This document shows, one piece after another, positions 1,893 through 31,080 of a DNA stretch of 32,806 nucleotides. The position numbers were made by a program, and so were the translations under genes. Source of the stretch: Ministeria vibrans ATCC 50519 (lineage: Eukaryota; Protista; Filasterea); the NCBI GenBank assembly GCA_943704425.1, contig CALSCP010001130.1, positions 1-32,806 of the forward strand. Direction: 5' to 3'. Position 1 is the stretch's first letter, and the number at the start of each line of letters is the position of its first letter. Under the pieces are notes generated by a model. It was not told the DNA's origin. It worked only from the letters and a program-made list of their open reading frames with translations, and ran no database searches.

Positions 1893-4800
1893 TACACACA
1901 CACACACACTCACATATATGACTTACTCTGGGAGACGCCTGAGCTCAACCACGCCATCACTACAACCCACGACCAGATGAGTGCCACGACGACTCACAGC
2001 CATGTCCAGCACCCGCTCACTGCACGACGACGACGCAATCAACTTGCCGTTGATGGTGTACAGGCAAATCATGTACACGCCCTAATGCATTTTAACACAC
2101 GGATGTCAGAATTTTACGTTTACTTCTGGGATATCACGAGAAAACAATTCATTGTTCGGTATAATTACCTTCTCCTCATAAGAGAAACGCTCAACGTAGA
2201 CTACCAGAGAACCGTCTTGGCAGATCTTGACGAACCGCACCTGCGGCGCCACCGTACCCATCGGCATGGGCGGCCGGAGGGTGCGCACGTACCGTCCAAG
2301 CCGACAAGTGTGCACAATCACAGTGCCATCCTACACACAGACATAAGATAACGCGATTTTCACCCTAACCCTAACCCTAACCCCAATGCCATTTTCTTCT
2401 TACCTTGGCGCCCGTTACTACCATGTCAAGGTCCGTATCCACTGCGGCACAGAGCAACTCGTCGTCATGGCCGTACAACACTTTTAAAGGCGAAGGAACA
2501 ATGTGGTGGATTGAGCCAGGCTGAGGCGACGCCACCAGCTGCCAGACCATTGCCGTGGTGTCGCGACTGCCCGTCACCAGCACACTATGCGTTGCATCGA
2601 CACACACACACGTCACAATGTCCGCGTGCATCGCCACCGATTGAATCACCCGGCCCACATCGAGCGCCGTCACCTTGATGGTGCTGTCCCAGTGACCGCC
2701 CGACACCGCCATCTTGCCGTCCGCCGACGTGCAAAACAGCGACGACGACACCTCCAGGTTCTGCGCAAACGGTCCACCAATGACGCGCAAGAAGCCCGAC
2801 GACAGTTGCGGGTCCAGGTCAAACGTAAAAGGAGCAACAGCACCCAGTGACGGCGCAGTCGGCACCCAACTATGACACCCAAGCACGCCTTGCTCGCCCA
2901 CCGTCACGACGCGATCCGGCGTGCCCGAGTACACAAATGCATTCAGCTGTGTCTCGGGCACTCCAATGTATACCACGGGCATCTTCGGACGGGTGTAGAC
3001 CTCCTTGAAAAAAGCCTTGAGTGTCTCACGCGCAACAAACACCGACACAGTACCCTCGGCCGAGGTCACACCCATGCCACCGCCGCCGTGCGCAAAACAT
3101 TCACAGTCAGCCACGGTGCCACCACCCACTGCCAGCGTTCCACCACTCACACCCGAACCCACACCACCCGACACCATCGCAGCGACACTTCCGCCTGGGC
3201 CGCCAAGCATCACCGCCCCAGCACCACCAGCGCCACCACCCCCGCCGCCGCCACTCGAGGTGCCCGCTACCGACACAACACTGCCACTGGAGACGGTAAA
3301 GCCACCGGCGACCACGGCATGTGTGTGTCCAAACGTCAGAGCACTCGACACGGCACTGTCTGCCAGCACGCCACCGCCACCACCGCCGCCACCACCACCG
3401 CTACTACTGGCCAAGTCAGTGGCAGCAGAAGTGGTGGGTTCGGACGACTTGGCGTTGCGCACCGCAGGCCCGCGCCCTGCGTACGCCTGTGGCACCACAC
3501 CGGTGATACCGCTTTCGACAAACGGCACAAGCTCGAGGCCCACACGAGGATCCGGCTGTGGCATGTATCGCTGAGGATGTGACCGTTTCAGCAGCTGCGT
3601 TGGCGTCTGCCCAAAGTTGTTGATTTGCGCCTCGATCGAGCGCCGCTCCACCTCGTCCGTCACCGAGTCAATGTCAATGGCACCCTCGTAGGTCACATAG
3701 TAGAAGACATTGTGGGCTGCGACCGCCTCGGGACCGCGCTGCTTCACACCAAAGATCAGATCAATCCAATGGTGCAGATTAGCACTGACAAACTCGGACT
3801 CGAGCGCCGCGCGCATCACCCGCACAAAGTCCTCGGGTCCCTTGGCCCAGGGCGGCAACACGACGTCGTCGACACGCTGCTCCTCGTCGCCCTGCAACAC
3901 ACCCAAGTCCAATTGGTTGAGATTCTGCAGGAACTCGGGACAGTAGTAAAACTCGGGTACGAGTTCCTTGACGTCCGTCGTGCTCGTCATGCACGAATTC
4001 CACGACTGCGCCATACTAATAAATTGTCGATCGGCATGGTCAAAGCGACCGCCCTGCAGGCGAATGTGCAGCGTCGTAAAGGGTTCGAGACGCACGAGAA
4101 AGTGAAGCACAGCGGCCGCCGTGCTGTAGTGCGAGCCATAGTGGAACTTGTCGACGACGCCCGAGGGATCCTCAAAGGAATGGTAGCGCTCGACAAAGTA
4201 CTCAAGACGCTCCGGATTGAGCGCACCCACCGGCTTGGAGAGATCACGGTAGACGCGCGGGTCGCTCAAGTCAAGTTTCTCGCTGGTGTAGTCAGCAAGC
4301 ACCCAAGGAAACACCGGGTACTGGTTGAGGTCGTTGTAGGTGCGTCCGGCAATGGTATTCAGTTGCATGAGGTAGTCAAAGTTGCTAATCTCGCGACGCT
4401 GCCAACGCTGCGTAAGGCCACTCTTACGCAGCATCTCGGCCGGCGAGCGGATGGCCGTCTGGACCAGGTTAGGCGGACGTAGCGACAGCAGTTTGCTGTA
4501 CACACGCGTGCGCTCGGTGCGCGTAAAGTTGAGGAAGCAATTAGTACGGTCAATAAGGAACACCTCCAAGGCGCTGGGACGCAGCATATGACGACGCAAG
4601 TGCACCTCGCGTATCTCGGCGAGGACCCAGTGGAAATCCCACACACGACGATCGACGGCTGTCACAATGTTACTCTCGTCACGACCCCCTTCGCGATCGG
4701 CCGTAAAGCGCACGCCGCTGCTCATGAGCTCCAGTCGGCCAGGCACAATGCTCATGAGCGTCACCAGCTGACAGTCACACACATGCACCAATTGCACATT

Positions 4801-7800
4801 GCTACCCATCTGAAGCAACAGTTCATTGTCTACCATTGTCCAATCGCCTTCGGTGCCGCTCGCTTCGCCCACACCGGCAGCACCCGTGCCGACAGTCACG
4901 TTGCCATCACCATCCACATGCTCCAAATCCATCGCCTCGAGCATCTCGTCGTTCGCATCGGCTCCCTCCGACGCCGACTGCATCGCTCGTTTGGCAGCCT
5001 TGGGCACAATACCCGCCAGACTCATCTCTTGCTGTTCGCCCGTGGCCGCACGACCGCTGTCGCGCGCCACCGACGCCTCTCGATGTCCATTGAAGAGCAG
5101 CGTGCGCGACAGCTTGCGACGCATACGACCCGACGTCTCGGTCGCGTCGAGCACCCAGCCGTTGCGGGGTCGCCAGGTGGTCGCCAAGGCACCTCGCTCG
5201 CCCACCATAAATGCCACATCCTCGTCCCATTGCGCCTGCAAAAGACGTCGCTCGGCATCTCGCTGTCGTCGCGCCAATAACGTGTGACTCGTCTCTGTCT
5301 GCGCTTTGGTCTGCACCACCGAAATAACGCGTTCTTGCGCGCGCTTCAACAGTGCCTCTTCGTTGCGCCGCAGTCGAGCAACGGTGGCGCGCGCCTTCGA
5401 CAGGCGTCGTCCAAATCGTTTCGACAAAAACTCTGCGTGGCCCGCGCTCTCGTAGTCTCCCACCTCGACCGACTGTTTCAGGGGCTCAAGCTCGCTCGCT
5501 ACCCGCAAAGCCCAGGTGGGACTCGACATGAGCGACGAGAGTGCCTCCCGATTCGACTCCTCGAGAGCACTCAGCGGACACAGCATGCTCGCACCCGCCT
5601 GCATGTACGGCAGCGTCTCGTGCCACGTGCGCAACACATATTGAATGGCCTGCACCAGCACGGTGCGTGTGCCACGGTTCGCTCGCGCCGCCCGGTCCAT
5701 GTACCACAAAGCCCAGGTAATGCGTGGCACAGTCTGGCCGTCGCTGCACACGTGCTGCACAAGACGATCAAGTGCAAACTGACACAGACTCGCTTCGCTG
5801 CAGAACAACAACTGGGAGAGACAGCGCAGCGTGACACGCGAGATACCTCCACCTTCGACACGCACATGCGAGCGTCCGCCCAACACCGGGTCGAGGCCAC
5901 TAAAACTAGACGAAAAGGTGCGTCCAAGTGTGTCGGTGAGCCGAATGAGCGCAACACAAAGCGCCGCATCGGGCCACTCAAGCTGCGGCTCGCCACTCTC
6001 CTTATCCTTGCTCGCGCGCTTCTTCTTTTTGTCACCGCCCCTGGCACTCGCCTCGTCCCCGTCCACCACACCGCTCAGCAGCAACTCAAAGGGCCGAACG
6101 CGAACGTCAAGGTACGCCATCGACGACGACGCACCGCCGTGACTACCCAGCGATCCAACTGACGATGCACCACGAATAAGATCTTGTTTGGCGGCCACCG
6201 GTGAGGGCGGAGGCTTTTCACCATCGTCGCTGTCGTCGCTGTCGTCGTGAGCCGTGGAAGAGGCGGCGTTTCCATCGGTGACAGGCATGCCCAATACATT
6301 GAGTGCTCCCAAAGAAACGGCAGTCGAGGCGCCTCCGGTCGCAGCTCCTTTGATCATACCTGCCGAGGGCTGGTAAAAGACAAACTCTTCAGTGAGCAGA
6401 ATGAGGTGGGCAGCAGTCGTAGCCAGCACTGGCGGAGGCTTGTGACGATCGCGACATAACTGTACGTCGTGCAAGCATTGAGAGAGAGCACGCCCCAGCA
6501 GACCGCGCTGAATCCAGTCGCGAAAGAGACGATGCTCCTCTGCCGGGTAGAGCACGTCGACAAACCGCATCGCATCCTCGAATGCCTTCCATGTCTTCTT
6601 GTCCGTGTGGAAACCGGCGCGCAATGCCTCACTGACACAATCGAGAACGGCGCACACAAGTGCACGGGCAGCCGCAAGCGATGGTGTTGCGGACGGCGAT
6701 GTGGGTGTCGATGACGACGTGGAGGAGTGCGAAGGAAGCTTGCTCTTGGGAGCGCCTGCGGCGGCTCGCGTGGCAGCCTCGAGATCAGCATCAAGGGGGT
6801 TGGGGCGGTCCGAAATGAGCTCGCCCAAATTGAGCATCTGAACGGATTGGAGACCGTCGCCTTGGACGTCGCCAGCAGAGGCGCACGCCGCATTCCATTC
6901 TTTGAGCAGCACGCGAGGTCGCAGCGGCACCACTGGCTGGTCGTACAGCAAGGCAAGCAGCTGACTGGACCACGCGAGGGAGGAGCGCAAGACAAGACCA
7001 GACGAGGCACTGGAACGCATCGAGTCGCGGATCTTGGTGACACCGCGACAGCGCAGCGCAGGCTCGCCGGTACGCATAAGCACCACAATGGCCGACACCA
7101 CATAGCTGTTGCGCAAAATGTTGTCACCACGACCGTCGCATGCGTACTCAAAGAGCGCGCGGGTCATCTTCACCGATAGCTCCTTGTTCATCATGCGTCG
7201 CAATAAACCCGCCTCGGTGGCGTCGTCGAGACGGAAGCGCTTGCGCAGTCGCTCGCCAATGTGGCCACTTGTCAAAAAGGCCATCATGGTGCGCATTGCA
7301 GTGAGACGTACCTGTTCTGAGGGACACGCGAGCAGCGTGGCGCACAAATCGCCACCGCCCGCAAGGCAAAAAGCATCGGCAAAGCCCGATATGTTGAGCG
7401 AGTCACAGCAGAAACGCAACAGCTCAAACACCTGCTCGTAGTCCCGACATGCGGCGAGAAACGAGACAATCGCATTGATTTCGGGCTGGCGAATGGCACG
7501 CAAAAGGTACTGGCGAATAATTTCAAGGGCGCACGCGCGCACACCTCGTCGCTCCTCCACTGTCAAACGCCACCGCCGACGCCCCTCGGCCGATACCTTC
7601 TTGGCGGCGGGCGCCGGTGGTGGGGCCGTTGTCTTGGTACCACCGTGTGTCTTGGAAAGCGACGTAGTAGTGTCCGGGGTGTGTGTTGTTGTGGGAGCCT
7701 GGCGTGTCAGCAGTGACGTACTGTACCAATGGTGTGCGTCGAGAATGTGTACGAAGAAAGTGGGACCGTACAGTTGGCGGGTGCGCTCGACACCGCCTTC

Positions 7801-10800
7801 CAGGTCATTCTTGATAAAGGCACTTAGAAGTTGCATGTGGGTCATTTGGGTGGCAAAATCGCAGCGTTCCCACACGTGAAAGTCAAACAACAGGTACTTG
7901 ATCGTCTCATGCTGCAGCGCCTCGTTCTGAATGGCGTCGGTCAGTTCGTGGATGACATGCAGCGCCTCAATGGTGATGCACGCGGAGCGCAGACGTTGCA
8001 AGAGCCACGCAGTCACGGCCATGCCATGACACTTGAGCATGCCCAGTTCGTTGTCGGCGTCCGTTGCAATGAGATCGCGCAACGTCGCAAAGAATTGCGT
8101 GACGAGGATCGCCTGACGCGATTGTATCGACATGAGCAGCGTGTTGCCCTCCGAGGAAACAATCACGCCCGTGTGAAGACGGTGCGTCACGTCAGGCGTG
8201 TCGACAGTGGTCGAGGGGACGAGCGATGGCAGCGACTGTGCGACAAGCACAAGCGGAGCGTGCGATGCAGCAGTGTCAGGAGCAGAAAGTGCGCGTGCAT
8301 TCTCCGCCACCTCCTGACCAGCTTCAGCCAGAGTCTGCTCATCCTCCTCGTCAATCGCCAACAGCGGTGCCATATCGTGCTCTTCTTCTGCCGTCAATTC
8401 ATGTACTATTGCATCCTCGTCGCTGTCTTCATCGCTGTTCGCGTTGGCGGAGTCTTTCTCATACTCACACTCTTGTTCCGCCGAAAGTTCTGGTACCGTT
8501 TCCTCTTCATCGTCGGCATTGTCGTCGTCATCGTCACCGTCATTGTCATTGTCGGTGGCATTGACGTTCTCGGTGGTATTGACATCGTCAGCTGCGTCGG
8601 CGTAAACGTCGCTGGTAGCGAGGTCATGTGTACTCTGGTCGAGGCGGTTGGATTGTGCCTTCTTGGCCTTTGCAGCCTTGGCCAGTGCCTCCATGTCGTC
8701 AGAGTAGAGTCCGGGAAATTCGGGAAAGTCGACCTGGGGCAGAAGCACGAAAAGGAGTTGAGCACCACCGAGGCTGCGAAAGACATCTTTGATGGAAGTT
8801 GTGACGCACTGGTGGCCGTAGAGGAGAGCATTGAGCTGGCGCGCCTTGGGATTTCGCAGGGCCAGGTCGAGACACACGCGACCCTTGCACGCACGCGCAT
8901 TGTAATTGAGCCAGATGCGATTGCTAAGAGAGCCGTCAAAGAGCGAGGCGGCAGCACGCGGGTAGTTGAGCGCGTCGGACTCTTGGAACTGCCCCGTGTA
9001 CTGAGGTCCCAATGCGTATAGGTCTGCGGCTTGCGACGCACCCACCGCATCACTGAGCAGGTAAACAGCGCCCATTTGGCCCCAAAGCCCCGACGCAAGA
9101 TACATGTCCGGAATAGAACCTGACAGTGACGGGTGAGGCATGTGCACAGCGTCGACTGGCCGACCGTTCACAAAAAGGTGTGCTTCCGCCTTGGCAAAAG
9201 GACGACGTGCAGCCGAATGTGTAAACACAACGTGATACCACTCGTTGCGCTTAAAGCGGTGGCGTTCGAACACACACGAGTGTTCGGTGCCGGCCACAAC
9301 TGCCGACAGCACCATCTCACCGCGACCCGTCACGCTCACCGTACACGATTCGCCCGTCGAGCTGACCATGGAAAAGAGTGTGGGTTCGTCAATGCCCGAC
9401 CGATGCGGTGGCTTCTTGTTCTTGAATCGCATGGCTTCCGCGCTGAGACCGCCCGAGCCGGGGGTGGTGCTCGAGCTTCCCGCACTGACACTGGTGCTGT
9501 GCACCCGCGACTCACTGGTGCTGCTGCTGCTGCCACCACCACCACCACCACCACCAAAACTGCCCACATCGCTGGCAGTAGAAGCGCCTCGTTGGCGAGA
9601 GGATGCCATGAGGCTGGCGTCGTCGAGCGGAATGTTGTCATTGGGATTGTGCAGGTCGGAGTCCGACAGAAGAGTGCGCGCTGGATCCACTTGCGACAAG
9701 CCTGCCGAGAGCGAGTAGAAGCGGTTGTCGTTGCCAAAGCTTTCGAAGCGCAACCAGGCACAAAAGGTGTAGCCATTGGCATTGCCTGCGCGACGGTCAC
9801 AAGGTGGGACTACAATACCCGAGCGAATTTCGCGAGGAAAGTCAAAGAAAAAGAGGGGACCGCTGCGCACACACATGCGCTGCACTGCTTTGAGCATGCG
9901 AGGAGCCTCGGCGGGTCGTCGTCGATCACGGGAGGCGCGAAAGAGTCGACAAAGTTGCTTGAGTTCGGCGGCCGACACAGAGTGAGCGCCGAGAAGCTCC
10001 ACAAGACAAACAATTTCCTCAAAGGCGACGGGATCCTCAAGGGCAAGACTGGGCAGTTTGCGCAAGAGGATGCCCAAGACACCGGCGTCGCAACAGCGAG
10101 TGCGGTTGGCATAGCCTTCATCACAGAGACGCATGAGCACGCGACAGAACCAGACGCGGTCGTCGGAGGAAAGGCGTTGGAACATCATGTCGAGGGCGAG
10201 GATGATCGCATTGGCATTCTGAATGACATTGACACCCTTTTCGACGTACTCGCCGTCGACCGCCATGTCGAGAAGGAGAAGCATGAGGCGCCGGTCCACC
10301 TCATTGTTGGTGGCAAGCAACATGCAGCGTCCGAGGTGAGGAAATCCGACGTGTGCACGGAATTTCTCTTTGCATCGATTCGAGCCGGCCATAAGCGACG
10401 TGAGTGTGCGCACGACTTCTTTGCAGAGAGGCAAGCCGGGTGCGCCATCGGTGGGGTGTGCGACGACGACATTGACAATTTTGACAAAAGAGCCCGCACC
10501 AATGAAGGACTCTTGCAAGCGAGCGCGGGTCTCGCCGGCGAGCATGGCGCGGATAGACTGAAGCATGAGAAGACGCACGCTGACTGCAAAGTCCTCGGTG
10601 GGCGACGACACAAAGACCTTGAGAAACATGTTGAGAAGCGTGACCATGCGACCCGAGCTGGCGACGGGCACGGTTCGCACAATGTGCACAATGACGCGCA
10701 GGGACCAGTGCCATACGACGGGCGGGGCGCGTTTGCTTGCAAGGTACGACACGAGGAGTTTCAGGGCGGGGTTGTTGAGGAAGACATCAAGAACGCCACC

Positions 10801-13527
10801 GGGATTACCAATGACATACATGCCAAGGAGGGAGAGGACAGCGACACGCGCGTCCGCACTCATCGTGCTGGTGCAGTCTCGAGCAATGGGCGTCAGTGTA
10901 CTGAGGCACTTGAGCTTTAGCAGCGCATCCTTGCAAACGGCAGGACGCAGAGCGAGAAGCAGAAGAATTTTGCGAGCGACTGCGTGCACGACGGGCGGGC
11001 GATAGGCGTGGAGAGCGAGCGACTGGAGCAAGAGGGAGATGGTTGTGACGGGACTCAGGTGTGGATTGACAGCGATGCGAATGACACAGCGCATGACGCT
11101 GGTTCGCACTGCCTGAAGTGCATCGTGAGCGTGACCATGACGAGTAGCATCGGAGATGCTGAGTGGACGCGACACATTATCCTGGTCATTGCTTGGCTTG
11201 CTGGTGGGGCTGGCAGACCCATCGTCGTCGTCGTCGTCGTCGTCGTCGTCGGCGTCATCGTCATCGTCGTCTCCAATGACATCCTCTTCTCCGTCTGGCT
11301 CGAGGAAATTTGTTCCGTCGCGAATGATGACAAACTTTGAAGAGGACGAGCGACGTAGGGCGGTATTGCTCGAGGTGTGTACGATGGGAACGCGATCGTC
11401 ACCGTTATTTTGCTGCGATCGACGACTCTCGTCGGTGTCAGTGTCGTCGTCAAAAACGGCGGCACTGTTGTTGGTAATTGAGGGGTCCATATCGGTGTCG
11501 TCTTGGTCGTCGTACTCGCCGGTGACGCCACCAGAGATGGAGCCCTTTGCACCAAGATTTGTCCAGATTTTTCGTCGTTTTTCGGCAATCACACGTTCGC
11601 GGGTGCGCACCGACTCGTGAGTTTCGGATGCGGTAGCTTCGAGGCGCAGGGCGAGACACGCATCGACGCTGTTTCCGCCAAACGGCGCGGAGAGAAGTGT
11701 CTCAAGCCAGTGAGCGCGTTCAAACTCGGCGAGAACAAGGCTGCTGTCGATTTGCTCGGCGTGCAGCAACTGGTCGAGCATGGCGACGAAGAAGCATTGG
11801 GCGCGCGAATCGTGCTCCATAATAAAGGTACGTGCATCGTCGTTGTCGCCCTCGGGTCGAATGAGTTCGTTGAAGGCGTCGAGAACGACACCGAGCAGGA
11901 GAGCGGCCAAAGGGCGATTACGAGGGGGAGCTGCAAAGGCCGTGTCGTGCGAGTTGGACGACGAGTCGGCGGTATACTCTTTCGGCATGTCCGGTGTGTT
12001 GCTGCTGGTAGTGCTGGTGGAGGAGGGGGAGGCAGTGGTAGCAGGAGTTGAGGTGGTAGGCAGAGGAGTGGGGGCAAAAGCTTGGACGAGGGCGTCGCCT
12101 GTTGCACGAAAGAGAATGTCGAGTTCGTGTGAACCATTCATAGGTTCGTCGGGGAGGACAACGCGCGGACTGGGCTCGTGTTCGATGACAAGGGTGTCGT
12201 CTGCGCCGGTGGACGAGGCGCCCTGACCGACCGGGTCTGAGGGAGCGCCGCCAAAACAGGCGCCTGGTTCGGAGCGCAAGTCAATGATGATGGTAGGTGT
12301 GCGTGATGTGTCAGACTGAATGAGGGAGGTGCACAAGAGCGTGGGTGCGATGCCTTCGTAGGTGCCAGTAGAACCGAGTGGCGGTGGGAAGTCGGAGGCG
12401 CGTCGTGCGACCCAGAGGAAGAGATCGCAGAGGCGTGTGGCGGCACCGCTACGCTGGAAGCGATCAATGGAGACGGCGGAGCCGTCGAGAGCACAGAGGA
12501 GGGCACGAAAGGCAATGAGCTGCAGGTGAAACTCGTCGCGAAGACCCTGGGCAGTGGCATAGCCATCGCCGCCCATGCTACGTTCGCGCGCAGGACGGAG
12601 AGTTGCATTCCAGCCAATGAGACCCGATAGAGCCTCGAGCGTCCCGTACTCGCGCGCCCGATCGCAAATGACGGATGATCGACAACTGAGGCTGGCGCCG
12701 ACGCACCAAAGGGCCTTCACTTGAATGATTTGAAGGGGCGCAGGCAGCGTGTTGTTGATACGGGCACGTTGAAGAGCCTTGAGCACATGTGTGAGCACCT
12801 CGAGCGCATCCGAGCGCAGGGCAATATCGGCGACGGTCGTGGAGGCGGCAGCAGCAGCCGCCGCCTGCATGGAATGGGGCGACTCAACCGGACGACGCCA
12901 AAAAAAGGAGAGAGAAGAGGGGAGTTCGGGGGGAGTGGCAGAGGCGACGGATGAGGGGGGAGTGGGATGGGGCACAGAGAGCGGGGTCGTCGAGGAGAAA
13001 GAGAGTGTCGAGGTGGACCCTGCTGAGGTGGTGCTGGTGGTTGTCGAAGTGAGAGTGTCGGGGGTCGAGAGGGACGAGGTGGCTGTGGCTGAAGGACGTT
13101 GTTGATGGGCGACGCAGGAGGGGTGGCTCTCGCCACGCATGGTGGCGCGGAAGGTGTGGTTGATGTCAAGAAGGTTCTCGATTAGATGGAGTGCGGCAAT
13201 GACACAGACGTGCATGTCGGCATCAATGGCGTGTTGCAAGGCCTGTATTTTGGACGGGTCGTCGTGCGCGGGCGACGACTGTGCCTTCTGTTGCGATTGT
13301 GTGGGTTGAGTCTGTCGGGTTCGTCGAGTGACCACGTCAGAGACGAAGCGAAGAAAACGCAAAGCCGAAGTGGCCGCACCATGATGGTAGAGGACAAGGC
13401 GGTCGTGGGGTAGCCTTGAGAGGGCCACCAGCGCATGTAGCATGGCAGTGACATAGCTGAGGAGTCGACGGACAGCTTTGAGTTCTCCGTGATCTCTTCG
13501 AGCATAGACTGTGGACGAAGAAGGAAG

Positions 13528-13624
<97 letters not shown>

Positions 13625-14556
13625 AAGAACCAAAGTGATTGAGAGAGAGAGAAAAGAAAGAAACAAAGTGATAGAGAGAGAGAAGGAGAAGGCAGAAGAG
13701 TAGAAATGAGACAATAATAATAATAAAAATATAATAATAATAATAATAACAACAACAACAGAGCTATTATTGCGCTTGACAGTAACTCTTTTGATCAGGA
13801 CACTTGTGTAGGTGGCTACCGGAAGGAAAGGACGAGGCGACATCGACAAAGGCTTCAGTGATACAGTATGGAATGTCATAGCGATGGCCAAGAGACTACA
13901 AGGAAAGATGCGGTGGCGGGGAGTGAGGTGAGTGGGGAGAGAGGGGTTTGTGTTGATCGTTGTACGTGATGGGGAGTGTTTCGCTCGGCGGGCTCCATGC
14001 TTAATAAAGGGCTCTCAAGCTCACTTCTGTATCCGACGGACTCGGAAGAGACGGCGCGCAGAAGAGGATGCAGCGACTGGACGATGGCATCCTGGGGCGG
14101 AAGGAAGGGGCAAGAGTGAGGACGACCACATCAAAAGGGCGACGGAACTGACAACGACATCGTTACCTTGACGCGGCTGTTGCGGGCACGCACATACTCG
14201 TGCCAACAGTGTTCTAATTCGTTTTCGTCGACGCTGCCCGACTCGGCGAATATGCTGAAAGGGAGAGGAGAGAAGAGAGAGAAAGAGAGAAAGAGAAATA
14301 GAGAGAGACAGATGAGAATAAACCCAATGAAGAGGGGGCAGTTGAGCCAAGCAGACAGGTGTGTGTGTGTGGGTGGGGATGGGAGCCACGCGGGGTCGGC
14401 CAGCAGGCAGGGCGGCGGGGGGTGTCCAGAGGGGAGTGCGTACCTGACGGGAAGCGGAAGACGACTGCATTGCGTGCAAGCGGCGTTTTCGGCGAGCGGG
14501 GTGGCCCCGTCGGAGGAGTCAGTCTCCGGCTTGCCACGCCGTTTGAGCCACTGCAT
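1604..14556 (-). CDS. Neurobeachin-like (NBEAL1/2-type) BEACH-domain protein, about 3944 aa
   Basis: Exons 14556-14444, 14254-14167, [14091-14025 uncertain], 13895-13820, 13508-2404, 2330-2169, 2081-1927, 1739-1604 (TAA); all GT-AG with consistent phases if the bracketed exon is skipped. Motifs: ConA/LamG [105 protein letters not shown] and DPSGVVDKFHYGSHYS, WD40 SGGHWD and LVTGSRDTT. The 5' exons are less certain. Confidence 0.93.
1783..1807. repeat. Short interstitial telomere-type repeats (CCCTAA) in the last BEACH-gene intron
   Basis: AGGGTTAACCCTAACCCTAATCCTA. Confidence 0.75.
1826..1914. repeat. (CA)n microsatellite, intronic
   Basis: Directly visible. Confidence 0.95.
2363..2384 (-). 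repeat. Interstitial telomere-type repeat GGGG(TTAGGG)3 in a BEACH-gene intron
   Basis: CCCTAACCCTAACCCTAACCCC on the + strand. Confidence 0.9.
13531..13760. repeat. Compound (GA)n plus (AAT)n/(AAC)n microsatellite in BEACH-gene intron 13819-13509
   Basis: Directly visible; it produces the spurious LLLL/LSLSLS N-terminus of the 3793-aa ORF. Confidence 0.95.
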
Positions 14557-14925: not shown

Positions 14926-15747
14926 CTAGGGATAGGCTTCGTTGACGTCGCCTGGCTTGTAGCAGCCGACGCCGCCAAGCCCGCAGTATCCGTCGACGTT
15001 CTTCGCCAAGTATTGCTGATGGTAATCTAGACACATCGACGAGAAGGGGTGAGACAGCAGCGCAACAAAGACGAGCGCACGATGGCGAGTTCACCTTCGG
15101 CAAAGTAGAACGGGGGCACAGGGGCGATTTGGGTGACAATCTTGCCAAAGCCCTTTTCGGAAAGACGCTTCTGGAAGGCATCGCGGGTGGCCAGGGCGAG
15201 CTTCTGCTGTGCGTCGGAGTAGAAGAAGATGGCGCCGCGGTACTGGGTGCCCTTGTCGCCGCCCTGGCGGTTCAGCTGGGTGGGGTCGTGGTTGGCCCAG
15301 AACACGTCGAGCATCGCTTTGTACGTCGTCTTGGACGGGTCAAAGATGACTCGGACAACCTCGGCGTGGCCCGTGGTGCCCGAGCACACCTCCTTGTACG
15401 TGGGGTGCTCGAGAGAGCCGCCGGCATAGCCGACGGCGGTTGAAACCACTCCGGCTTGCTGGAAGAACTTCCGCTCGGCGCCTGACGAGAAGGGAAGGAG
15501 ACTAGCGTGAGCCGGCTCGGCGGGACGAGGTTACTATCGTACCCCAAAAGCAGCCCAGGCCAAACATGGCGCGCTCCATCCCCGCGAACTCTCCGTCGAG
15601 CGGCGCAGACAGGACGAAATGACGGTCGGGAACTTGAATGGGATTACGGGCCATCGAGCTTGTCGAGAAGCAGGAAGCAGAAGAGAGGGCGGAAAGTGTA
15701 AAGAGTGTGAGGGTTTGGCGGAATGATTGACTCCAACGACTCAGCAT
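14926..15747 (-). CDS. MSRA: Peptide methionine sulfoxide reductase A, about 230 aa, with a probable mitochondrial presequence
   Basis: Exons 15747-15543, 15481-15095, 15026-14926. Catalytic GCFWG spans intron 1; also [56 protein letters not shown] and GYCG. Confidence 0.96.
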
Positions 15748-29100: not shown

Positions 29101-29884
29101 GGGGCAATTTGAGTCCGAGTGACTCGACGGCGGCGACATGCACGCTGAGAGTGTTCAAGCGATCCGAGTCGAACGCCAGCGAGTGCGTGCGGTACGTCTC
29201 CATCTTGATCTTGGATGCGTCCGCCGAGATGATGTTGAAGTAGCTCTCAAGAGCACCTTCGTTGACGGCAATGCGCACCCACGACCGTGCGCGACCACTC
29301 CCGGTTTTCAATTCGACCTGGAGCGAAAAAAGCGAAAGGACAAAAACAAAGAGAGCGTCAGCCGGAGAGAAACCGACGGATCGCAGTACCTTGCGCTTGA
29401 TTCGGTCGACTGTATCTCCGTGCGTGATCGTGATGAGATAATTCCAGCAGGAAGCAGACGATGAGGTGTCGCGCAGTGCGTACGAGAGAACTGCAGATGC
29501 AAAACAAAAGAAAAAAGGTGGTGGGAAGAGTGTTTTGAGTGGATGTGACGGGGTACAGCGAGCGCTCCATGATCGACAAGGAATGCAACCACAGCCAAGC
29601 CCAGGCATGTGCTGTGCGCGTCTCACCTCGGTCGATGCTTCGACAAAAGCGCTCAAGAGACCAGTCGATTTTGCCCGCCGAAGTGGGCCCTTCTTCGTCG
29701 CGCTGGACAAAGGCGCTTTGGACCTGGGGCAGAGGGGGGTGGGGGTAGAGGGATGAGGGGCAGTGCGGGCGAGAGGGAGCGGCAGCCGAACCTGCTTGAC
29801 GGCTGAGGCAACGTCACACACGATTTTGTCCTTGGCCGGCGCTGCCTCTCGAAAGCGCTTCTCCTTGTCATCAAAGAGGCCCAT
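25281..29884 (-). CDS. RUN + PH domain protein, PLEKHM2/SKIP-like (putative Arl8 effector), about 1280 aa
   Basis: Exons 29884-29792, 29723-29627, 29490-29390, 29317-26312, 26259-26196, 25970-25803, 25594-25281, all phases consistent. RUN: KDKIVCDVASAVKQ, LERFCRSIDRVLSYAL, GRARSWVRIAVNEGALESY. Also DNQTQLKLLLEVF, LLLTNFAVYV, a PH end (LAAETEGEAREWCRAL) and a C-terminal FLLVLGEVWRDIFMVEL, all resembling PLEKHM2. Confidence 0.82.
25682..25759. repeat. (TTA)n microsatellite in the last RUN-PH intron; a similar tract lies at about 26050-26181
   Basis: Directly visible. Confidence 0.95.
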
Positions 29885-30118
29885 TTCGAGAAGACGAAAA
29901 AGAAAGAAAGTGTGAAGATAAATTAGATTAAGTGATTAACGTGATTCAAGTTTCAAGACGGAAGACGCAAGTAAGAAGAAAAAGTCGAGGATTCGAATGA
30001 ACCATACGATAAAAATACGGATCAAGAAAGGACTCAAAAGAATCAAGTGCTGACTACTTAGTACTTTCTTTCAGTGAACTTGGTAGCGGTGGTCGTGCAG
30101 AGTAAATATTGATCAATT

Positions 30119-31080
30119 ATGCTGTCGCGGACTCTGTTGCGAAGGCTCCCCGTCCAGGCGACTGCGTCTGTTGCAACTCGATTCGCCGCACTTTCGGCGA
30201 CTCGCTCTGCTCCTTTGGCCGAGTCGGACACGAGAACGACGCAGCGCTCACTGTTTAGAAGAATGCTTCAGGCCGTAGGCGTCGCTGCCGTCCCGGCAAC
30301 CACAGCTTTGGTACGGACACGATTCCTATTCTTTGTGAACTCATCGACGATCACCCACAGGCAGAGACAAGCGGTGCGGGCGCCGCGTCGTCGGTTGCAG
30401 TGTCCCCTTTTCTTGCGAAGTTCCTTGCCGTTTCTCCTCCAGCCTGCTTTATATTTCTGCAGGCTTCCGGGTAAGACGGTGTTTTGCCCGTTTGGTTGCG
30501 TTTTCCTCAACGATCTCTGGCGCCTCATAGGATGAAGACTGTGCGCGAAATTCAGCAGGAGAAGAGCGTTGGCGATCGCTCGGTACTTCCCTTTCTTTCG
30601 CTCATGGTCAACTGCATGACGTGGTCGGTGTACGGTGCAATGGTACAGGACATGACCGTCCTCTTGCCCAACCTGTCAGGAGTCTGCTTTGGTGCCTACC
30701 AGACATACGTGTATGCGCAGCACAACAAAGCCTCCTTGGCGACGTATTATGCTACGGCTGGAGCCATTCTGGCGTCGGTGGGTGTCATGGCGACCACATT
30801 GCCACTTGAGGTCGCGTCACACAGCATTGGACTGACCGGGTGTGCGCTTGCCGTCTTCATGATGTCAAGTCCACTAGCTGTCATCCGCACAGTCATCAAA
30901 GACAAATCTACGGCGGCCCTGCCATTCATCACGAGCGCCGCAGTGTTTTTTAACTCGTCCACTTGGTTTGGCTACGGCTACCTCGTCGCCGACAACCCTC
31001 TCATCTACGTGCCCAACGGCCTAGGCTGGATTTCCGCTGTGGTTCAGCTCTCTCTCTTTGCCGTTTATCCCCGGAAATAA
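30119..31080 (+). CDS. SWEET (MtN3/saliva) sugar transporter with a long N-terminal extension, about 283 aa
   Basis: Exons 30119-30310, 30361-30470, 30531-31080. Two MtN3 repeats: KTVREIQQEKSVG..LPF..NCMTWSVYG..LLPN and SPLAVIRTVIKDKSTAALPF..NSSTWFGYG..IYVPNGLG..QLSLF. Confidence 0.93.

Follow-up and report, generated by a model that had tools for sequence, protein, structure and literature searches.

Gene structure at the SWEET locus

The window, by which we mean the whole 32,806-nt stretch of Ministeria vibrans DNA that was analysed, carries on its plus strand (30119-31080) a gene for a SWEET-family transporter, which we modelled as three exons separated by two GT..AG introns; joined, exons 1-3 give 852 nt, that is, 283 codons followed by a TAA stop. 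The same 283-residue model had been put forward in a first-pass annotation made from the sequence, and its coordinates, splice sites and frame all check out. An AT-rich spacer of 234 nt separates the gene from a divergently transcribed minus-strand gene with its start at 29884, and within this spacer we read a short upstream ORF of 18 codons (29997..30053, plus strand), which would be relevant only if transcription begins upstream of it. Elsewhere in the window, positions 2377-13758 of the minus strand hold a single, seemingly intronless open frame of 3793 codons encoding a neurobeachin/BEACH-WD40 protein (PF02138, E = 2e-125).

Exon 3 (30531-31080, plus strand), which encodes TM2-TM7 and ends in the TAA stop, matched PF03083 in two stretches with an E-value of 1e-33 (115.5 bits against a cut-off of 23.7) and aligned to the plant transporters AtSWEET13 (5XPD) and OsSWEET2b (5CTG); the codon-usage log-likelihood of its coding frame was +32 bits. 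Both MtN3/PQ-loop repeats were recovered by the genome scan, and alignment to full-length relatives gave the 3+1+3 arrangement of seven helices, with TM1 in exon 2 and TM2-TM7 in exon 3. The two Trp/Asn pairs of the sugar pocket are kept, aligning with W58/N76 and W180/N196 of AtSWEET13. The protein matches PF03083 and not PF03650, the profile of the mitochondrial pyruvate carrier (MPC), and a look-up in the protein atlas returned generic SWEET clusters only.

Exon 2 (30361-30470, plus strand) encodes a short N-tail and TM1 (about 30394-30465), and because it can be aligned residue by residue with TM1 of relatives known in full length, the position of the 60-nt intron 2 that follows (30471-30530, GTAAGA..CATAG) is fixed. 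An intron matching intron 2 in position is also present in P0029, the nearest relative; the 763-nt contig of P0029 stops within the intron that precedes its last exon and so is silent on exon 1. The frame of exon 2 is open back to 30259 and no farther, without any ATG, so an upstream exon is required for TM1, and exon 1 (30119-30310, plus strand; 64 codons, residues 1-64), which is open in one frame only, is by our reading of the sequence the sole candidate for the start codon of the TM1 exon. An in-frame TGA (30110-30112) lies two codons 5' of the exon 1 ATG, and the GC content, about 0.23-0.47 in the spacer, rises to 0.6-0.7 at about 30119-30140 and falls to 0.43 within intron 1. Of the donor/acceptor combinations that keep the frame, that of this 50-nt intron (30311-30360, GTACGG..CACAG) is the best.

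The database entry for this gene, which derives from ENA metagenome contigs of the same species, consists of the 182-residue exon 3 ORF alone; its own cluster likewise holds only the exon 3 ORF, with no transcript-derived product in the database, and a scan of metagenome contigs queried with exon 3 found no closer relatives with upstream exons. A same-species metagenome contig differed from the window at three places in 1188 nt, namely a Q13K replacement, a silent substitution in exon 2 and, at +3 in intron 1, an A or G (both purines). Near-identical contigs occur in the ENA metagenome assemblies ERZ23497376 and ERZ23497041 (sample series SCHR19-1), so the organism or a close strain of it was present in those samples.

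The N-terminal leader

Known SWEETs begin a few residues before TM1. In the three-exon model about 75 residues lie ahead of TM1, bearing out the N-terminal extension that the first-pass annotation had described, and this leader can be divided into three parts. Residues 1-34 (30119..30220, plus strand) resemble a matrix-targeting signal in composition, with 5 Arg, 8 Ala, 6 Leu, 4 Ser and 4 Thr and no Asp or Glu, so that the earlier remark on an Arg/Ala/Ser/Thr-rich start without acidic residues proved accurate; within this part R21-F22|A23 fits an R-2 site for the processing peptidase MPP, a putative assignment judged by eye. A polar linker follows (residues 35-46, 30221..30256, plus strand), which contains the first acidic residues, E35 and D37. 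The third part (30257..30366 including intron 1, plus strand) is like a sorting signal: the twin arginine R47-R48 precedes a 16-residue uncharged stretch, M49-L64, which is moderately hydrophobic (Kyte-Doolittle 1.68 over 12 residues), and an A-x-A site, A63-L64-A65|E66, straddles the junction of exons 1 and 2. The opening residues MLSR are shared, as had been noticed before, with an MsrA-like ORF that begins at 15747 on the minus strand of the window.

We asked how often such a composition arises by chance. When first-ATG ORFs of at least 64 codons were taken from all six frames of 92 kb of the genome, 25 of 309 (8%) had no D or E and at least 5 R or K within their first 34 residues, as the leader does. 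The maximum hydrophobic moment of the leader (0.55 in an 11-residue window) was not above that of shuffled sequences (p = 0.84). With 8% of arbitrary ATG-started ORFs also passing, the composition by itself is weak evidence, and the leader gains significance only from the gene context in which it sits and from its recurrence among relatives.

Comparators from the same genome

The HSP60 of this genome has a leader of the same make-up as residues 1-34 of the SWEET, and it ends in a textbook R-S-Y|A site. Cytochrome c1 has F-R-R followed by an Ala/Gly/Val-rich stretch ending in A-x-A, which resembles the second element of the SWEET leader. Its first exon (L017, G000:C1199, reverse strand 659-1237) has two possible in-frame starts, MFRR... 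or, 34 codons upstream, MRLR..., and the choice between them decides whether a full bipartite leader is present. A gene for an IMP-type S26 (S26A) peptidase lies on contig C1546, where three exon pieces match PF10502 positions 6-48, 53-80 and 115-168, and the gene also matches TIGR02227. Cytosolic HSP70 has an ordinary acidic start, and its best named matches are animal proteins with 70-73% identity; a source organism that is related to animals and lacks plastids agrees with the choanoflagellates among the SWEET relatives. The second SWEET of the genome (contig C2418) begins directly with TM1 and has no leader. Citrate synthase, ATP synthase beta and mtHSP70 were left out of the comparison, as their N-termini were not cleanly readable across introns.

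Long (TG)n/(CA)n microsatellites occur in the introns of the second SWEET (L002 1600-1900, G000:C2418) and of the IMP peptidase gene (L018 1190-1440, G000:C1546), and in the latter locus there is a run of N upstream. The first ORF of an MFS-type transporter (L011, G000:C368, about 4987 downward, minus strand), which adjoins the triosephosphate isomerase (TPI) gene, has a basic, presequence-like start (MLRLSRLL...); this could be another transporter with a leader or a sign that such starts are common in this genome.

Recurrence of the leader among relatives

Among the best full-length matches of the first protein search were proteins that also have long N-terminal extensions, including chlorarachniophyte sequences, one of which opens with the first four residues of the window protein. 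A profile built from five extended proteins and run against 1.8 billion representatives gave 3965 matches, and in the best 150, which we examined, there were many with 45-130 residues before TM1, a basic acid-free start and acidic residues later on. Three kinds could be told apart among these 150: proteins with no extension; proteins with a hydrophobic, signal-peptide-like start and then an extension; and proteins with a basic acid-free start that becomes acidic later, often with a second uncharged stretch immediately ahead of TM1. The third kind is found in the choanoflagellates Salpingoeca infusionum and Choanoeca flexa, the foraminiferan Bolivina argentea, the diplonemid Sulcionema specki and the chlorarachniophytes Amorphochlora, Norrisiella and Lotharella, and the sequences of these named carriers come mostly from transcriptomes.

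A quick LG+G4 tree of 154 domain sequences, from which six short rows and extra cluster members had been left out, contained a split with 99% SH-aLRT support between a side of 84 rows that includes the window gene and a side of 70 rows. By a presequence rule of our own making, and with many tree rows being incomplete gene calls, 24 of 74 N-complete rows on the window side passed as compared to 4 of 63 on the other side (Fisher p = 2e-4), where 15 of the 63 were signal-peptide-like. The suggestion that the extension might be conserved in a clade of protist homologs thus found support in a well-supported branch that often carries it. Many of the "no extension" rows on the window side are probably truncated gene calls; the database entry for the window gene itself is truncated in the same way. 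Across this branch the Trp/Asn pocket pairs are conserved at 90% or more, which makes a sugar-like substrate the default guess.

The two sides of the split also differ in the helices. Mean Kyte-Doolittle hydrophobicity of the helices was 1.41 on the window side and 1.61 on the other, and TM3, TM4 and TM7 were each less hydrophobic on the window side (p = 1e-8 to 1e-11), although both comparisons reflect one deep split and are not phylogenetically independent. Lower helix hydrophobicity is expected of imported mitochondrial inner-membrane proteins. An internal uncharged run was present in 39 of 57 extended relatives, mostly with K or R before it and E or D after it. The AlphaFold2 model of the Choanoeca relative has a confident seven-helix SWEET core (pLDDT 96-98), a low-confidence helix at residues 2-20, and an extra hydrophobic stretch that is not packed into the bundle, a predicted picture that weakly fits a targeting element. 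One well-supported subclade (P0021, P0022, P0039 and P0047) has N-terminal regions of 280-330 residues, partly acidic and with no Pfam match, which are followed by a strongly hydrophobic extra helix; to judge by these sequences, a true eighth helix would fit this pattern better than a cleaved signal.

A possible route to the mitochondrial inner membrane

The interpretation to which we give the most weight, while regarding it as evenly poised between right and wrong, is that the window gene encodes an inner-membrane SWEET that would be imported by a bipartite and probably cleaved presequence. Residues 1 to about 34, basic and acid-free, would bring the precursor to TOM and TIM23 and would then be removed by MPP. 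The second part, made up of the twin Arg, the 16-residue uncharged stretch and the A-x-A site, would play the role that the sorting signal has in cytochrome c1: it would either halt in the inner membrane or be re-exported, and the IMP peptidase may cleave it. This would put the mature N-terminus on the intermembrane-space side and the C-terminus on the matrix side, the usual N-out, C-in topology of SWEETs with the matrix standing in for the cytoplasm. Since the mature protein keeps the SWEET sugar pocket, a neutral sugar or a comparable small solute would be able to equilibrate through it between the two sides of the inner membrane. The sequence establishes the structure of the gene, its SWEET membership, and the leader with its make-up and its recurrence in relatives, while import, cleavage, topology and substrate are inferred. 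A mitochondrial targeting role is favored by the recurrence of the leader in several supergroups, including the plastid-free choanoflagellates. The first-pass annotation had suggested a mitochondrial inner-membrane SWEET of this kind, importing a sugar or small metabolite; of that proposal the leader stood, being real in the sequence and recurring in relatives, while a job in matrix sugar use drew no support from the hexose kinases described below. We found no report of a mitochondrial SWEET in the literature searched.

The alternative that survives best, though we consider it unlikely, is a secretory-pathway SWEET with eight helices, in which the uncharged stretch would be a signal anchor and the basic N-tail would stay in the cytosol by the positive-inside rule, perhaps carrying a di-arginine sorting motif. 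To our knowledge the characterized SWEETs all reside in plasma, vacuolar or Golgi membranes. The Arg-Arg before the uncharged stretch and the Glu after it fit a helix with a cytosolic N-terminus and a lumenal C-terminus, which would leave TM1 in its normal sense, and the subclade of P0021, P0022, P0039 and P0047 shows long, partly acidic N-termini ahead of a strongly hydrophobic extra helix. However, in the window gene and most of its relatives the basic part is at the extreme N-terminus and an acidic linker comes before the stretch, an arrangement that is predicted by a cleaved presequence and not by the positive-inside rule and that consequently argues against an eighth helix. The only moderate hydrophobicity of the stretch, its place outside the bundle in the AlphaFold2 model of the Choanoeca relative and the lowered helix hydrophobicity of the branch also speak against a signal anchor.

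We think it improbable that the 5' end has been mis-modelled, such that translation starts at M49 (30263), the only alternative in-frame start, or follows other splicing, and that the first 48 codons are untranslated and look like a presequence by chance. The chance rate calculated above would allow for this, as would the database record, with its exon 3 ORF and its lack of a transcript-derived product. Codon usage does not favor the exon 1 frame either, as its log-likelihood was -9.6 bits in frame versus -2.8 bits in another frame. A local junction-frame check found several other GT..AG pairs that preserve the frame, but every one of them still begins at M1 or M49. Between these two starts, M1 is the first AUG that a scanning ribosome would take, it follows an in-frame stop at the point where the GC content reaches coding level, and the spacer to the divergent gene is short at 234 nt. 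A start at M49 would moreover give a leader without a charged n-region, and relatives known from transcriptomes translate the equivalent basic N-terminal part. Dual or other targeting, for example a mitochondrial form from M1 and an endomembrane form from M49, is in our view very improbable: the basic part is bracketed by two in-frame ATGs and the cluster of one relative has gene calls of differing lengths, but the differing lengths come from how genes were predicted on metagenome contigs and do not show two products, and nothing in the sequence demands such an arrangement.

A broader proposal, which we hold more tentatively than inner-membrane import of the window protein itself and put a little short of an even call, is that an old and widespread SWEET branch, spanning animal relatives, Rhizaria and diplonemids, may reside in the inner membrane by way of a TIM23 bipartite presequence and may there uniport a neutral sugar or small solute. 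The SWEET fold would then have been recruited to this membrane twice independently, the MPC being the other case.

Relation to known transporters and to sugar metabolism

With canonical SWEETs (PF03083; AtSWEET13, OsSWEET2b and human SLC50A1) the window protein shares the two MtN3 triple-helix repeats and the linker helix, the Trp/Asn pocket pairs, and prolines in TM1, TM2, TM5 and TM6. It differs from them in the roughly 75 additional N-terminal residues, with their presequence-like and sorting-like parts, and in the less hydrophobic helices of its branch. Like the two-part presequences known from cytochromes b2 and c1, and like N-out polytopic proteins that bear a presequence, such as Oxa1, the leader combines a basic part with further basic residues, an uncharged stretch and, after it, a small-x-small site; yeast c1 and b2 and Oxa1 enter here as established background. 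No SWEET-family cargo of the bipartite-presequence route was found in the literature searched.

We know of no free-sugar transporter that has been established in the mitochondrial inner membrane. The nearest precedent for the fold is the MPC, since MPC1 and MPC2 (PF03650) are described as having a SWEET/semiSWEET-related fold in the inner membrane, with three-helix subunits that form heterodimers and, lacking a presequence, enter by the carrier (TIM22) route (PMC6945462). The window protein differs from these in having seven helices, a match to PF03083 rather than PF03650, and a leader of presequence type. MPC1 and MPC2 are both present in this genome as separate genes (contigs C241 and C1258), which ruled out the SWEET as a substitute for the MPC. 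For the protist Blastocystis, the glycolytic-intermediate carrier GIC, a member of the SLC25 family, has been proposed to connect sugar metabolism in the cytosol with the matrix of the mitochondrion (PMC11115451). The GIC belongs to the mitochondrial carrier family and moves phosphorylated intermediates (PMC11115451), whereas a SWEET would be expected to move uncharged sugars.

The idea that sugar-using enzymes of this genome might carry presequences was not borne out by the hexose kinases. Hexokinase (L034, G000:C376, reverse strand around 731-1237) has a short hydrophobic start rich in Ala, Gly and Val, which in sequence is closer to the anchor by which plant and animal hexokinases attach to the outer membrane than to a matrix presequence, and glucokinase has no N-terminal extension. 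With no matrix presequence on either of these two hexose kinase genes of the genome, we found no obvious consumer of matrix hexose. The TPI gene is single and not fused to GAPDH, and a link to mitochondrial glycolysis is unsupported, given the single unfused TPI and the two kinases without presequences.

Should the mitochondrial interpretation be true, the branch would provide a candidate for the exchange of sugar or a small neutral solute with the matrix in many protists, and the SWEET fold would reach the inner membrane by the presequence route while its relative the MPC does so by the carrier route. It would also offer an easily tested case of how an N-out polytopic protein with an odd number of helices is oriented during import. 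Some choanoflagellates (e.g., Salpingoeca rosetta) are transfectable, and since the clade includes choanoflagellates, a localization test should be practical.

Relatives with a signal peptide and an extension

The relatives that combine a signal peptide with an extension of 40-80 residues (P0023, P0028, P0035, P0049, P0074, P0084, P0088, P0116, P0128 and P0159) are concentrated on the side of the tree opposite the window gene. Several of them have Phe or Tyr just after the likely cleavage site, as in the plastid-targeting leaders of algae with complex plastids, and judged by these N-terminal sequences this class could represent plastid SWEETs.
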